NCBI GenBank assembly: GCA_000708835.1
Contig: DF237279.1
Coordinates: 37,856 to 101,855, forward strand
DNA from: Klebsormidium nitens
Lineage: Eukaryota > Plantae > Klebsormidiophyceae
Length of the DNA: 64,000 nucleotides
Reading direction: 5' to 3'
The notes beneath the pieces are model-generated. The model was not told the origin of the DNA. It saw nothing but the letters and a program-made list of their open reading frames with translations, and ran no database searches. Positions 33,430 to 42,708 of this stretch are shown in pieces. Position 1 is the first letter of the stretch, and every line of letters starts with the position of its first letter. The translations under genes and the position numbers were made by a program.

Positions 33430-33537
33430 GCAACTTCCCTCCGCACGCTTTACCGTGGTCAGGTAGTTAGGGTATGATCTCAGCATCAGAACAGTGGTGT
33501 CACAAGGACAGCCACTGTCTTCAGCACCCCTAGTTGC
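33430..33537 (-). promoter_or_regulatory. TPP riboswitch aptamer in the THI1 3' UTR
   Basis: Minus strand reads GCAACT-AGGGGTGC...GCTGAGA..ATACCCT..ACCTGA-CCACG-GTAAAG-CGTG-CGGAGGGA-AGTTGC. P1 GCAACT/AGTTGC, conserved UGAGA, P5 CACG/CGTG. Lies 128 nt after the THI1 stop codon. Confidence 0.95.
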
Positions 33538-33665
33538 ATCAGGATTGTGGCACGTTGACACAAGACCGTGCACACTGACACTATCTGCAGTGCATCAGAC
33601 CCAACTTCAAGAAGCAAGATCTCCTGCCTGTACAAGATGCATAACATTTCTAACTAGAAGGGAAC

Positions 33666-35664
33666 TTAGGCAGACGCGGTAGTGTCGTCAGCATCGGCCA
33701 GGATGAGCTCGGGGACAACACCAGATTCGCTGACCATTGTTCCGTCAATGGCGTTGGGGAGGCCAAGGGCCTGGAGGGCGAGGTGACCAGCCTTCTGGCC
33801 AGAGATCATCATAGCACCGAAAGTGGGGCCCTGTAGCAGAGAGAAAAGGTTATGTTGAATAGGCTTCTGCTTGCAGAGCAAAATTGAGGGACAAAACAAA
33901 CTTCAGGCAAAGACAGAAGTGCTGCCTGATTGCTTGCATCGGAGGATAATGCAAGAGGAGAAAAGGGCGTAGCTATCTGCCTTCCGATATAGTGACGGGC
34001 AATGCTCTAATGAGCAGTTTGCTGACGAGAACTCCCTGCAAGCAATTTGCAGCATTGACCGATGTGCACCCCGGACCGTTACCAAAGAACATTCATCTAC
34101 AGACCACAGCTAACTTTCAGTGGCAGATAATCTCCCAACACATGTAACCCCTCCTCTCACCATCCTGGGGGCGCCCTCAATCTCAGCCACCTCCATGCCA
34201 GTCACGATCATGCCAGGCACGACCATCCTGGTCAGAGCAACCACAGCATCCTCAGCCTTGTTCATGTCCAGGGCCTTCATCCCAGGTACGTTGTCGACCA
34301 GGCCCACGGACTTGAGCCTCTTCACACCAGTGGCTCCCATGGGGCCATCGTGACCGCAGGAAGAGACGACGACCTTGGACTCCATGGCGTTGGGGTCCAT
34401 GCAGGACTGGGTGTCGTGGTTCTGGGACACCAGGGACCAGTTGGTCACGACTCCACCGACGGCACCATCCCTAGGACAAAAAAGACAAGATGATAAGAAC
34501 TAAGAATGCAGAAGTTAAAACCTTTAGTCTTCATGCCAAGAAAATTCAGAATGGACCACCCAGGCATGGAGAGTTACAAACCGCGGGTGAGCAACTGAAT
34601 ACACCCGAAAATTTGACTGATGCCAGTCTGTCAGGCAGCAGCAGACACTACATCAATCAAGGGAGCTATTGAAAAGCATTGCAGTATGATCATTGAATTG
34701 GGTCGACAAAATTCTGCGATGCTTCCCCGGGTCAATGCAGAATACAAAATCAGGTCCATCAAACCACTGTCAGGTCTTGAAGAAAAACGAGTTGCGAAAG
34801 GCAATGTTGGTCATCCAACCTGATGATCAGGTCCTCAGCAGCGACCGCGTTGAAAAGCTTGACATTGGGGCGAGCAAGGAGCTTGGACATGATGGTGGAG
34901 GTGAAAAGGGCGGCGTGCTTGATGACCACGTAGGTGTCCATCTCTTCATAAGGGACACCAATATCATCAAGGAAGGCCTGAGCGGGCTTCCTGACGATCA
35001 TGGCACTGCAAGGGTGAAGAGTGGTAATTACTCCTACGATTTCCAACAAACTATCTGACAGGAGGCCAGCAAGTGTGCTTCCTGAGAGCATCAAGTCAAT
35101 GCAGGCGGTTGCAACATGAGGATGCAGTTGCAAATGTGCCAAGAACCAATCAAATCACAGCACACACTGCCAGAGTGCAGTCAGTGCTCTGTGATGTAGT
35201 TGCTCCAAATGCTCGGACTGTGCTGCTCAAAGCACCAACCTGAAGAGCTGGCCCCCGAGCCAGGCACCCCCACCAGGGGACACGGACTGCTCGATGATGG
35301 CCACCTTCACATTGGGGTTCTTGCTAATCTCATAAGCAGCAGACAGACCAGCAGAGCCAGCCCCCACCACAATGACGTCAGTCTCGGCGTGGGTGATCAT
35401 GTCAGTCATGTAGCGGCGGGTCATCTCCCGGGCAACAGTGGACTCCCTGATCGGCTCGAACTTGAACTTGTTGATGTCATACTTGGGCTCGCCGTAGGCG
35501 CGGGCGGAGCCGCGGGTAGAAGCGCGAACAGTGGACTTGGGGGCAGCAGGAGCGATGCGGACGCCGCAGAAAGAGCTGGTGCGGGAAGAGGGGGTTGAAG
35601 CCGCCTTGGTGGCAGAGAAGCTGGCAATGGAGCCAGAGGCACGGAGGCAGGCAGTGGAAGCCAT
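33666..35664 (-). CDS. THI1: Thiamine thiazole synthase (THI1/THI4), plastid transit peptide, 4 exons, 361 aa
   Basis: Exons 35664-35240, 35005-34820, 34470-34161, 33830-33666. Motifs [38 protein letters not shown] (sulfur-donor Cys), [16 protein letters not shown]. Confidence 0.97.
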
Positions 35665-39500: not shown

Positions 39501-42213
39501 GGGCGTGCTCCTGCGCTTCATCCCGCTCACTGCCAAGCGCATGACGGGCATCGTCTCGCGGGGGGGATCTATTCACGCCAAGTGGTGCCTCTCTCACCAT
39601 AAGGAGAACTTTGCATACGAGCACTGGGATGATATCCTGGACATCTGCTCCCAATACGATATCAGCCTGTCCATAGGCGATGGGCTGCGCCCCGGGTCGA
39701 TCTACGATGCGAACGACCTGGCTCAGTTCTCGGAGCTCGCGGTGCAGGGGGAGCTCACGCGGCGCGCCTGGGAGAAGGACGTCCAGGTACGGATCTGAGG
39801 TGCAAATTTGGAGACGTCACCTCACGTCTGATGCGGGTTTTCTAGTTTTGAAGAGTCTGCTTCAATCAATCTTCGAGTGCTTATAACGCGCATATCAAGT
39901 CCTGACGCAGGATATGCTTTCCCGGCCACTGGGTTCGATGCAAAAGACTGAGGGCAAATCCAATTGTCGTTTCTGCTTTTCCTGCCTCTGGGTTTGAGGT
40001 TAAAAGAATTCCCATAGTCGACGGAATTGGGAACTCGTGTGGTGCTCTTCTTGAGTTCTACGACTGAGGGGTCCAAAGCACTTTTGATTCCAAGACAATG
40101 TTGGAGGACAAACCCGATGGTCGTTTCTTTTTCGCAGGTGATGAACGAGGGCCCCGGCCACGTTCCCCTCCACAAGATCCCCGAGAACATGGAGAAGCAA
40201 CTAGACTGGTGCAGCGAGGCACCGTTCTACACCCTGGGCCCTCTCACCACTGACGTTGCACCCGGATACGACCACATTACGAGCGCGATCGGAGCTGCTA
40301 ACATTGGGGCCCTTGGGTGAGTAAACGTTTCTAAAGAGGGTTGACTTGTTGCTGCGCAGAGGCCATCGAGGCAATCTAATTGACGGGCTGCTTCAGGGGG
40401 ATCAATGCAGTTCTCTGTGAAGCCGACGAGCAATCACCAGTCGCTTTGAGCCACATAATGATGTCTCGCTATCATCTTCGAATTCAATGTCCCCACAAAT
40501 GTGAGGAAGATTCACCTTCCTCTCTTTGCAGTACTACTTCCGGATGTGTTCATTGCCTCAAATCCTATCAAACCGAAACTAGTGCACTTCTGACGATGCA
40601 AATCCGTTCCAAGCCGCATCGCTGATCTTTGAGCCAGCAAAATTGAGATGTGTTCGTATGCTCCCTTATTCTCAATTCTAAACTTGGATCTGCTCGTTGC
40701 AGGACCGCCCTGCTCTGCTACGTCACCCCCAAGGAGCACCTGGGCCTGCCCAACCGGGATGACGTCAAGACCGGCGTCATCTCGTATAAGATCGCCGCGC
40801 ATGCTGCCGACCTCGCCAAGCAACACCCGCACGCCCAGGAGTGGGACGACGCGCTCAGCAAGGCGCGCTTCGAGTTCCGCTGGCGGGACCAGTTTGCGCT
40901 CTCGCTCGACCCGGTGACTGCGGAGGCATTCCACGACGAGACGCTGCCAGCGGAGGGGGCCAAGGTGAGGTTCGCAGTTCTTTTAAGGCGTCTTTTTTTG
41001 AAGTTTTGTCGCTCACTCAGATTGGAAACGTTGCCCTTGACTCGATTCAGGGTTTAAGAGGCGTTTGACAAGGAGACGCTTTCGCCTTCGGGTCTGTCGG
41101 GGAGTGTCCGCTTCTCAGGTTCGCGAAGGTTTCATTCTTTTTGTTCGACGATTCTCATCTCTTACGTTCATGGCGGCAAGCGTTTGAATCGCCAAGCTCT
41201 TTGCATGAAAAGATTGCGCCAACGGACTCAGTTCATCCGAAACCCCTCTCTGCAGGTGGCGCACTTTTGTTCGATGTGCGGCCCCAAGTTCTGCTCGATG
41301 AAGATCACGGAGGACGTCCGCAAGTACGCGGACGAGCATGGCTACGGCGACGTGGAGGCGATCGAGGCGGGCATGGCGGCCATGAGCGCGGAGTTCCAGG
41401 CGAGCCATCCGCGCTGCTCTTGCAGTGCTTCTTTGCTTCGGATGTTATGAAACTTCCAGATACCCGAAAACAATACAGTGCCCTAAATTCTGAAAGCTGA
41501 AAGCTGAAAGGAAGTTTGGTGGCTTCTCACTGATAAGAGTCCAATTTGAAGAGAAGATCAGATGATTGTATAGCACATGCAGCGGATGAGGGGGACCCCT
41601 TGCAGGTCAGCGTCCATAACGCAATAAAGGAAGGGTGGGGTCGAGATCGGTGGACGAGACCCAAGTACTGACAAAGAGAAGACGGCGCGAGGTCATTGAC
41701 AGCGTCATGTGCAGCGCCGAAGGAGTGTGAATTGTGCACTTTGGCAAAAGTCGAATTGCTTCGCTCGGAGGGTTTAATCTGTAATGAGTGGATTGTTGCA
41801 GAACCGTATTTCAGCCACCAATCTGGAGGTTTTGGGTGCGTCTGTCACGTCTGTAAAGTCTGGAACGTCTCACAAACTCGGCGGTCTGCTCGCGGGTTGG
41901 CCAAGAAGACGGGACCTGAGTGGATCGCTTCGACGCTTCTATTTAAGCGGCCGGTCTGGAAATGCTGGCTAAGGTTCCTACGCCTGCTGGAGCCTCTGAT
42001 TAGGCGGCCAGATCCAAATTCTCTCATATTTCAAACCCAGTCAAAAAAGCCACAGCCAAACCCTCCCAAAAACGTTATAAGCGTCTCATCAACCCAATAG
42101 CTTGGCTGCAGGCGGCCAAGAAGACGGTAAGCGGGGAGCAGCACGGCGAAGCGGGCGGCGAGATCTACCTGCCAGAGGAGTACGTCAAGGCGCGCGCGGG
42201 GGCGTCTCCGTGA
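36515..42213 (+). CDS. THIC: Phosphomethylpyrimidine synthase (HMP-P synthase), plastid transit peptide, 9 exons, 670 aa
   Basis: Exons 36515-36885, 37403-37530, 38047-38291, 38795-39055, 39466-39786, 40138-40316, 40703-40964, 41256-41399, 42112-42213. Motifs [67 protein letters not shown] (Fe-S cysteines), [18 protein letters not shown]. Intron 8 has a GC donor (41400). Confidence 0.97.
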
Positions 42214-42600
42214 GGTGAGGCGGGCGCTTACAACATTCGAAAATGAGGGCGTCGAGAGGAACTCCCTTTAACGAGGACAAGCTGTCTTGAGATCTGAGCC
42301 GGATCTTGCTGCTTTTAGTGGAAGGATTCCGATGAGACGAATCCTGATTGATGCTGATGAAAAAGAGCAATGCGTGCGCTCTTCCTGTAGCAAGGCGTGC
42401 ATTTGATTTGTAGCAACGGTTCTCTCAGTGGGCCTCCTCTGTTGCAGTGCTTTGCAGGGCAGACTTCGAGCTCGGGCGTGCCTACGAGTGCCTCCGGAAG
42501 GTTCACCATGTACAGGCAGGATAAATGAATGGTTAGGAAGCTGTTTCCCTGGCTTGTGATTGGATCGAAAGTCGTGCATGTCTTGTGCCTGGCAAATCCT

Positions 42601-42708
42601 GCAACTAGGGGTGCTGAAGACGGCGGCTGTCCTCGTGACACCGCTGTTCTGATGCTGAGATTATACCCTAACTACCTGACCACGGTAAAGCGTGCGGAGG
42701 GAAGTTGC
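42601..42708 (+). promoter_or_regulatory. TPP riboswitch aptamer in the THIC 3' UTR
   Basis: GCAACTAGGGGTGC...GCTGAGATTATACCCTAACTACCTGACCACGGTAAAGCGTGCGGAGGGAAGTTGC. P1-P5 all pair. Flanks GGCAAATCC (42591-42599) and GGATTTGCC (42711-42719) extend P1. Starts ~390 nt after the THIC stop codon. Confidence 0.96.

Follow-up and report, generated by a model that had tools for sequence, protein, structure and literature searches.

Structure of the THI1-THIC locus

The window, i.e. the whole 64-kb stretch of scaffold DF237279.1 (GCA_000708835.1) that was analysed, shows 100% identity to this public assembly of Klebsormidium nitens and contains the alga's nuclear THI1-THIC locus. THI1 on the minus strand and THIC on the plus strand are divergent neighbours, and the public annotation of the scaffold likewise has Thi4 and thiaminC head-to-head. 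Such a pair had been proposed in an earlier note on this DNA and is borne out by Pfam-matched exons, gene models and RNA contigs; the 850-bp spacing given there agrees with the start codons at positions 35664 (THI1) and 36515 (THIC). The locus is free of assembly gaps, and DNA contigs contain 94-98% of the words spanning the intergenic stretch.

THI1 encodes a thiazole synthase of the Thi4 family (361 aa; CDS 33666..35664, minus strand) in four exons (35664-35240, 35005-34820, 34470-34161 and 33830-33666) separated by GT-AG introns, all three of which are present as joints in RNA contigs of 4 runs. A Thi4 gene of the same length, 361 aa, stands at this position in the public annotation. PF01946 matches the THI1 exons with E-values of 5e-29 and 4e-39, the best solved relative is 1RP0 (E 2e-54), and the model includes the sequence VSSCGHDGP, which contains the SSCGHDGP motif, whose cysteine is known from the literature as a sulphur donor (PMC11521341). 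The stop codon (33666-33668) is followed by the aptamer about 125 nt downstream. In Logan RNA contigs (4 runs from 4 studies) the mature THI1 mRNA retains this aptamer: contigs run through it and end near 33223-33230, which defines a 3' UTR of 33223..33665 (minus strand). The 3'-UTR contig pieces (33230-33475 and 33446-33831) have a depth of 54-83% of that of the coding contigs in the four runs (4 studies), one contig end at 33223 carries adapter, and depth is zero below 33100.

THIC encodes HMP-P synthase (670 aa; CDS 36515..42213, plus strand) in nine exons (36515-36885, 37403-37530, 38047-38291, 38795-39055, 39466-39786, 40138-40316, 40703-40964, 41256-41399 and 42112-42213). Five of them are matched by PF01964 (ThiC_Rad_SAM, radical SAM), and the best solved relatives are 4S25 (E 9e-65) and 4N7Q. 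The sequence CSMCGPKFC in the model represents the C-terminal CX2CX4C motif, which has an iron-sulphur role. Introns 1-3 are present as joints in RNA contigs, and a transcript of a related species, L004, matches every coding junction; intron 8 (41400-42111) is of the GC-AG type.

A THIC contig of run X12, extending from 36316 to the aptamer, is 2458 nt long, exactly as the spliced model. Only the removal of 233 nt from the 3' UTR accounts for this length, from which we infer a constitutive GT-AG intron (42215..42447, plus strand) beginning 1 nt past the stop codon (42211-42213); use of the next acceptor instead of 42447 would give 2449 nt. The aptamer thus lies 386 nt downstream of the stop codon in the DNA and 153 nt downstream once this intron has been removed. 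The X12 contig (1 run) runs on into THIC's own aptamer and bears the THIC-type variants.

TPP aptamers in both 3' UTRs

The earlier note had placed a complete TPP aptamer in each 3' UTR. A scan with RF00059 recovered both with the predicted ends, downstream of both stop codons and as full-model matches (model positions 1-105): the THI1 aptamer at 33419..33541 (minus strand, 51.5 bits) and the THIC aptamer at 42597..42719 (plus strand, 52.8 bits). Their E-values were 6.5e-8 (THI1) and 3e-8 (THIC) in an 11.5-kb scan, and 3.6e-7 and 1.7e-7, respectively, in the scan of the whole 64-kb window, in which no third TPP match was found. Two full-model matches in the 3' UTRs of thiamine genes cannot plausibly be due to chance.

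Both scores are 1.5-2.8 bits short of the Rfam gathering score of 54.3 bits, which is an operational cut-off and not a structural feature, and a default Rfam scan therefore misses both aptamers. The shortfall results from a 37-nt insertion in P3, three non-canonical pairs and the loss of P3a, an optional hairpin. The copy of the relative scores 51.5 bits and land-plant THIC copies 57-68 bits.

The consensus fold (RNAalifold) recovers P1, P2, P3 and P4/P5, and both copies contain the J3/2 CUGAGA pyrimidine sensor and the ACCUGA...GCG.AGGGA pyrophosphate-sensor helix. The ligand-contacting blocks CUGAGA, ACCUGA and GCGGAGGGA are invariant across three copies, i.e. the two of K. nitens and that of the relative. 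Among 34 pairs in these three sequences, two changed on both sides and two on one side, all of them in P3, where one pair is broken (U-U) in one aptamer copy; the three sequences thus lend modest support to maintenance of the pairs by covariation.

A conserved motif upstream of the aptamers

Each 3' UTR also carries a 13-nt motif, TGTACAGGCAGGA, located 81 nt upstream of the THI1 aptamer (33622..33634, minus strand) and 76 nt upstream of the THIC aptamer (42509..42521, plus strand). These are the only two matches in the window, against 0.05 expected. The motif is invariant in L004, the flanks of which do not align, and its distance from the THIC stop codon after splicing is 62 nt, in agreement with the 68 nt of L004. 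It is absent upstream of the THIC aptamers of seven other streptophytes. As a conserved element specific to this lineage, it may point to another type of 3'-UTR expression platform.

The motif contains a candidate GC-type splice donor, CAG/GCAGGA, which might be the regulated one. The energy of a motif-aptamer duplex was no better than that of shuffled versions (fractions 0.31, 0.80 and 0.33), and in the MFE folds the partner of the motif differs between the two UTRs. No alternative joint was found in the THI1 3' UTR in contigs of four runs, contigs being prone to drop rare forms. The UTRs seen for THI1 (4 runs) and THIC (1 run) all retain the aptamer, and none of them is a short form that stops ahead of it.

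By analogy with land-plant THIC, TPP feedback on each mRNA most likely operates through that mRNA's own aptamer and the processing of its 3' UTR, in which splicing, the choice of the 3' end or both would lead to decay of the mRNA. Both thiamine branches would then respond to one ligand and with equal sensitivity. We consider it probable that the locus as a whole is best explained in this way, i.e. as a divergent THI1-THIC pair with aptamer-retaining mRNAs, homogenised twin switches (see below) and TPP feedback on each mRNA.

Intergenic region and linkage of the two genes

THI1 contigs extend to 35672-35719 and THIC contigs begin at 36316-36384, which leaves between the divergent mRNAs an untranscribed gap of at most 596 bp (35720..36315), where RNA contig depth is near 0. 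With less than 1 kb between the transcript 5' ends, the head-to-head pair has the spacing of a bidirectional-promoter gene pair. The palindrome GGTACGTACC occurs twice in the gap (35847-35856 and 36226-36235), once near each transcript 5' end; the window as a whole has three copies, where 0.01 would be expected. An evening-element-like sequence, AAATATCT, lies at the centre of the gap (35978-35985); it is not clearly enriched (four matches in the window against 1.0 expected).

These features, together with the expression of both genes in all four runs, could suggest a selected two-gene regulon, along the lines of the earlier note, in which one bidirectional promoter drives THI1 and THIC, linkage has been selected for the balance of thiazole and pyrimidine, and the twin riboswitches add symmetric feedback. 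However, the size of the gap and the palindrome near each 5' end agree equally well with a single promoter for both genes and with two separate ones that abut each other. The THI1:THIC ratio of contig depth, a poor measure, varies from 1.4 to 4.6 across the runs. Moreover, the neighbouring genes along the stretch switch strand alternately in the public annotation, so a head-to-head orientation is expected once two genes adjoin, and riboswitch control of both branches is known without linkage.

The synteny search proposed earlier did not find THI1-THIC adjacency elsewhere: in nine other streptophyte genomes retaining the THIC riboswitch, the 10 kb around THIC do not include THI1. These are two species of Riccia, Calypogeia, Physcomitrium, Sphagnum, Diphasiastrum, Selaginella, Closterium and Adiantum (annotation only). 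The linkage is therefore not a conserved streptophyte feature and appears to be specific to this lineage. Taken together, these observations make the selected regulon a tentative and rather doubtful reading. The linkage may have been selected for co-regulation or may be a fortunate accident of gene order; if it is a neutral accident, the finding amounts to no more than a neat annotation of elements already known.

Evolution of the twin aptamers

The two aptamers form an inverted repeat with arms of 118 nt (33421-33538 and 42600-42717), which are 93% complementary and 9061 nt apart; the repeat search also pairs the two copies of the 13-nt motif as an inverted repeat. Of 108 core sites, 5 distinguish the THI1 aptamer from the THIC aptamer, whereas 10-11 distinguish each of them from the aptamer of the relative, and at eight positions both K. 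nitens copies are alike and the relative is different. Between the two UTRs, only the 118 nt and an 18-nt block with the motif are conserved, the remaining flanks and the spacer being unalignable. In the THIC transcript of the relative (L004), THIC-like sequence gives way to THI1-like downstream sequence, the switch occurring inside the aptamer. The comparison comprises one relative, whose transcript could be a chimera that arose in assembly through the aptamer sequence common to both genes.

The smaller divergence within than between species, with P3 pairing preserved, indicates that the twin aptamers have probably been subject to concerted evolution. We hypothesize that gene conversion or recombination between the inverted copies, 9 kb apart, keeps the aptamers near-identical, and that selection maintains P3 pairing and the upstream motif. 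A similar process is known from sex-chromosome palindromes, whose arms are homogenised by gene conversion (PMC3723533). There too, inverted copies are closer within a genome than between species, and rare arm-arm inversions are expected. However, the K. nitens arms are only 118 nt long and consist of the non-coding sensors of two genes, enclosing both of these genes.

As the aptamers are inverted repeats bracketing both genes, a self-maintaining module can be envisaged, in which recombination between the aptamers homogenises the sensors and sometimes flips the 9-kb THI1-THIC segment. In such a module the linkage would be selected and conserved in Klebsormidiophyceae, and the 13-nt motif would be a TPP-controlled GC-AG donor. 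The homogenised sensors would guarantee that the thiazole branch and the pyrimidine branch have identical TPP set-points, each flip would swap the 3' ends beyond the aptamers, leaving the THI1-type flank of the relative's THIC as its footprint, and the locus would be a eukaryotic counterpart of the thi operon. We regard this extended scheme as unlikely.

Alternatively, the similarity might reflect youth, i.e. a recent single event by which one gene without an aptamer acquired the aptamer and motif of the other. The restriction of identity to the two blocks, with unalignable sequence between them, and the eight states common to both copies and absent in the relative are in line with such an event. 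Yet motif, spacing and aptamer type are already the same in the relative's transcript, which makes the architecture older than the species split, and the exchange of flanks in that transcript suggests that the copies have recombined repeatedly. Furthermore, one copy event does not account for two separate conserved blocks with a diverged spacer, and THI1 riboswitches are ancestral in green plants (PMC11521341). A recent copy is thus distinctly improbable, and concerted evolution of older twin aptamers is preferred.

Finally, it is extremely improbable that misassembly produced the adjacency or the second aptamer, or that the aptamers are decaying, functionless remnants: despite scores under the gathering cut-off and DNA runs that may be the assembly's own source, RNA contigs join each aptamer variant to its own gene, the full-model matches reach E-values of about 1e-7, substitutions in paired regions keep pairing bar the one U-U, the ligand-contacting blocks do not vary in the three copies, and the gapless locus is covered by DNA contigs.

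Comparison with known thiamine regulatory systems

To our knowledge, no riboswitches other than those for TPP have been established in eukaryotes. In bacterial thi operons, genes of the thiazole and pyrimidine branches are co-transcribed under one leader THI-box aptamer. Likewise, the branch genes of K. nitens are physically linked and associated with putative TPP-sensing RNA; in contrast to the operons, they form two monocistronic divergent mRNAs, each with a 3' aptamer of its own. Physical coupling of the two branch genes is thus possible in a eukaryote.

In Chlamydomonas and Volvox, THI4 and THIC riboswitches act by alternative splicing, with aptamers in the 5' UTR or an internal intron (Croft 2007, as summarised in PMC10226581). 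K. nitens likewise has aptamers in both branch genes of a green alga, their control being presumed by analogy, but here both are in 3' UTRs, and no linkage of the Chlamydomonas and Volvox genes is reported.

A 3'-UTR TPP riboswitch in THI1, giving dual control of both branches, occurs in non-seed plants, and streptophyte algae are mentioned as well (PMC11521341, where Bocobza 2007 is cited). The corresponding background in the earlier note agrees with reviews and this 2024 survey. As in these plants, K. nitens THI1 has its own 3'-UTR aptamer besides that of THIC. The survey examined THI1 synteny and names THIC three times; it reports no THIC neighbour, and the words 'adjacent', 'head-to-head' and 'bidirectional' are absent from it. 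Unlike in the cases described there, THI1 of K. nitens adjoins THIC, and the aptamer of one gene is a near-identical inverted copy of that of the other.

Riboswitch control of both THI1 and THIC has precedents among non-seed plants and green algae. What is new is that the genes are physically linked and that their twin switches are homogenised; the linked mirror-image arrangement appears to be unreported in the literature. The locus places the 3'-UTR position of both switches in a streptophyte alga outside land plants, and suggests that one homogenised sensor sequence can serve two different genes. As a natural system of about 10 kb, it might be helpful in asking whether pathway balance depends on matched riboswitch set-points and on a shared promoter. 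Balancing the two halves of plant thiamine synthesis is also a practical matter for vitamin B1 engineering.

The 3'-UTR TPP riboswitch of Arabidopsis THIC was described by Bocobza 2007 and Wachter 2007 (summarised in PMC10226581 and PMC5853225). K. nitens THIC resembles land-plant THIC in its 3'-UTR aptamer, in the 3'-UTR intron adjacent to the stop codon and in the enzyme encoded. However, the main stable form of Arabidopsis THIC is without the aptamer, whereas the K. nitens contigs retain the whole aptamer, no short or spliced form being seen. Also unlike in land-plant THIC, the upstream element is the lineage-specific 13-nt motif with its candidate GC-type donor and without significant P4/P5 pairing. 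The K. nitens aptamer belongs to a different sequence type (P1 GCAACUAG, P5 loop GGUAAAGC) with a lower score, and its THIC has nine coding exons, compared with 2-5 in land-plant THIC.

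Gene models of THI1 and THIC

The observation of two linked thiamine genes with twin aptamers is real and well supported. Its individual elements belong to known kinds; what is new is that the genes are linked head-to-head, that their inverted aptamers are apparently homogenised, and that a motif 5' of them is conserved. The pair is a plausible candidate for a two-gene regulon.

THI1 lies on the minus strand and has four coding exons (35664-35240, 35005-34820, 34470-34161 and 33830-33666), encoding a protein of 361 aa whose N-terminus resembles a transit peptide and which contains the cysteine motif SSCGHDGP. 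The coding region of THIC is found on the plus strand at 36515-42213. It comprises nine exons encoding 670 aa, including the CX2CX4C motif, and seven of its eight introns are of the GT-AG type, intron 8 being GC-AG. The start codons of the two models are 850 bp apart, exactly the spacing read in the earlier note. The closest solved structures are Arabidopsis THI1 (1RP0) and Arabidopsis THIC (4S25, 4N7Q), respectively. The public annotation of DF237279.1 in GCA_000708835.1 (scaffold 100% identical to window positions 26515-52559) likewise places a 361-aa Thi4 gene head-to-head with thiaminC.

The public THIC model, GAQ87084.1 (719 aa), does not contain the GC-AG intron 8 (41400-42111). Its C-terminus is wrong: past 'AEFQ' it no longer follows the sequence conserved in plants, and its CDS, reading on across the true stop codon and the 3'-UTR intron, extends to 42559, 38 nt before the aptamer. 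The 670-aa THIC ending at 42213 is backed by RNA contigs and by a related transcript.

Among the THIC proteins of the collection searched, P0319 is the closest; it has 92% identity to that of K. nitens and shares a 90% cluster with GAQ87084.1, 'thiaminC [Klebsormidium nitens]'. A homology search started from P0319 added no further relatives. The JGI contig that encodes P0319 (L004) is 2.5 kb long and lacks introns, and is therefore a transcript of a related species. In the THIC tree, K. nitens forms a long branch that groups weakly with other streptophyte algae and falls outside the clades of liverworts, ferns and seed plants. THIC identity, exon structure and this tree speak against Marchantia, Physcomitrium or a hornwort as the source of the window. 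In a comparison with loci L001, L002, L003, L005, L006, L007, L009 and L012, the number of THIC coding exons is nine in K. nitens, at least seven in Closterium and two to five in land plants. All the genes compared have introns after residues 123 and 166, their first two intron positions, and residues 167-660 are encoded by a single exon in liverworts and lycophytes. This comparison suggests intron loss in embryophytes.

TPP aptamers and their similarity

A complete TPP aptamer had been claimed 3' of each gene, and this holds. The RF00059 scan proposed in the earlier note was run with E-value thresholds and recovered two full-length matches, at 42597-42719 (plus strand, THIC, 52.8 bits) and 33419-33541 (minus strand, THI1, 51.5 bits), both with E-values of about 1e-7 when the whole window is the search space. 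Both scores are slightly below the gathering score of the model (54.3 bits), and with default settings Rfam returned no match in the window. There is no further RF00059 match in the window. The Thi4 exons (minus strand) and the ThiC_Rad_SAM exons (plus strand) identified with Pfam sit between the two aptamers. The lineage-specific aptamer core gave no match in a metagenome scan.

The two aptamers form an inverted repeat of 118 nt, 93% complementary, whose arms are 9061 nt apart. The motif TGTACAGGCAGGA lies within an 18-nt block that forms a second inverted pair; the sequence between and flanking the two repeat blocks is unalignable. Over the 108-nt core, the THI1 and THIC aptamers of K. nitens differ at 5 positions, and each differs from the aptamer of the relative at 10-11; at 8 positions both K. 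nitens copies are identical and the relative differs. Folding the three copies to a consensus recovered stems P1-P5. Most of the variation falls in P3, where the changes preserve pairing with one exception (both partners have changed in two pairs, and one partner in two others). As the copies are more alike within the genome than orthologues are between species, and this in a freely varying stem, the comparison indicates gene conversion or recombination between the aptamer copies, or a recent copy.

The transcript of the relative is THIC-like as far as the 5' side of P1. Past the aptamer it matches the THI1 flank of K. nitens (L004:2161-2380 versus window 33538-33318; 80% identity over 223 nt) and not the THIC flank. 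This switch could be the footprint of an event between the inverted aptamers (exchange, inversion or conversion) or, alternatively, the product of a chimeric metatranscriptome assembly across the shared repeat.

Transcripts of the two genes

For four RNA runs, each from a different study, Logan contigs were aligned to positions 32900-38899. All three THI1 introns and introns 1-3 of THIC match the models exactly. The THI1 mRNA extends through the aptamer and ends near 33223-33230, and the contig pieces covering this part (33446-33831 and 33230-33475) are 54-83% as deep as the THI1 coding contigs. No alternative joint was found in the THI1 3' UTR among the contigs of the four runs, the only isoform seen being the one that keeps the aptamer.

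An apparent joint between opposite strands in run X12 is a THIC contig aligned onto the THI1 aptamer; of the five sites that separate the two copies, three have the THIC-type base in this contig. The contig is 2458 nt long, which equals the spliced model 36316-42692 only if a 233-nt GT-AG intron (42215-42447, plus strand), starting one base past the stop codon, is removed. THIC therefore has a constitutive stop-proximal 3'-UTR intron, as most plants do, and its mature mRNA keeps the motif and the aptamer besides losing this intron. Two contigs of run X1 pass from THI1 exon sequence into 255 nt of unrelated sequence (at 33743 and 35519); they may stem from a second THI1-like transcript, from contamination or from chimeric assembly.

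Possible mechanism of feedback

In land plants, the THIC aptamer masks an upstream 5' splice site when TPP is absent; the intron is then retained, and its poly(A) site yields a short, stable mRNA; when TPP is present, splicing takes out the poly(A) site, resulting in long, unstable 3' UTRs (PMC10226581, PMC5853225). Of these features, K. nitens shares the location in the 3' UTR and the intron close to the stop codon.

The 13-nt motif TGTACAGGCAGGA is the sole invariant block 5' of the aptamer in all three UTRs (two of K. nitens and that of L004), lies 65-81 nt upstream of it, and is absent elsewhere in the window (0.05 expected). It includes a plausible GC-type donor, CAG|GCAGGA, and GC-AG splicing is used by THIC itself. 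Three results speak against the motif being a masked 5' splice site: its pairing with the aptamer is no stronger than that of shuffled versions, its partner in the MFE folds differs in each UTR, and it was not found 5' of the THIC aptamers of Riccia, Diphasiastrum, Selaginella, Physcomitrium, Sphagnum and Closterium. We consider a role as a regulated GC donor rather doubtful. Because this evidence is adverse and the sole isoform seen keeps the aptamer, we commit only to a feedback by analogy with land plants, in which TPP would act on both mRNAs via 3'-UTR processing, and this we regard as reasonably probable.

Reviews and a 2024 survey (PMC11521341) report that in non-seed plants a TPP riboswitch lies in the 3' UTR of THI1, in agreement with the background given in the earlier note for early-diverging land plants, and that both thiamine branches are under dual post-transcriptional control, streptophyte algae included. 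The survey examined THI1 synteny and does not mention a THIC neighbour. A full-text literature search retrieved nothing relevant on THI1-THIC linkage, on Klebsormidium riboswitches or on gene conversion between riboswitch copies.

Linkage in other genomes

THI1 does not lie within 10 kb of THIC, by annotation and tblastn, in Riccia sorocarpa, R. fluitans, Calypogeia fissa, Physcomitrium patens (one paralogue), Sphagnum balticum, Diphasiastrum complanatum, Selaginella moellendorffii and Closterium, nor, by annotation only, in Adiantum. As none of these nine streptophytes has the adjacency, the linkage does not look ancestral to streptophytes as sampled and is probably lineage-specific. The Arabidopsis genes are located on different chromosomes. 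Scanning the THIC loci other than that of Adiantum with RF00059 gave a match 3' of THIC in seven of them, and none at E <=0.001 in Calypogeia.

Neighbouring genes in this stretch alternate in orientation. With a gene number that we take to be about 16,000, two named genes would be neighbours by chance with a probability of roughly 1e-4, a post hoc figure.

Riccia fluitans (CM092408.1), whose THIC has its own 3' aptamer at L007:13130-13262, contains a second, weaker TPP match (L007:7948-8080, plus strand; 47.3 bits, E 4e-6). This match lies some 2 kb upstream of THIC, with an Exo_endo_phos gene ending some 0.9 kb before it, and may be either what is left of a partial THIC duplication or a riboswitch belonging to another gene.

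Intergenic region and neighbouring features

The THI1 contigs reach 35672-35719 and the THIC contigs start at 36316-36384, leaving an untranscribed stretch of at most 596 bp (35720-36315). The palindrome GGTACGTACC occurs twice in it, once at 128 nt from the 5' end of THI1 and once at 81 nt from that of THIC; the window has three copies in all, versus 0.01 expected. A AAATATCT/AGATATCT pair at the centre of the gap resembles the evening element, and AAATATCT is not clearly enriched in the window. One shared promoter and two abutting promoters would fit this layout equally well. The third GGTACGTACC copy (7313-7322) is located near another gene start, and the three copies suggest a genome-wide GTAC-type promoter element.

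The region 15043-32007 (plus strand) contains very long stop-free stretches of 1052, 1109, 849 and 729 aa with no Pfam hit, which the public annotation fuses into one domain-less gene of 4356 aa ending just upstream of the 3' end of THI1. A retrotransposon remnant with an RVT_1 domain (E 6e-11) occupies the scaffold end (58535-64000, minus strand) and is interrupted by the only assembly gap of the window (60754-60773).
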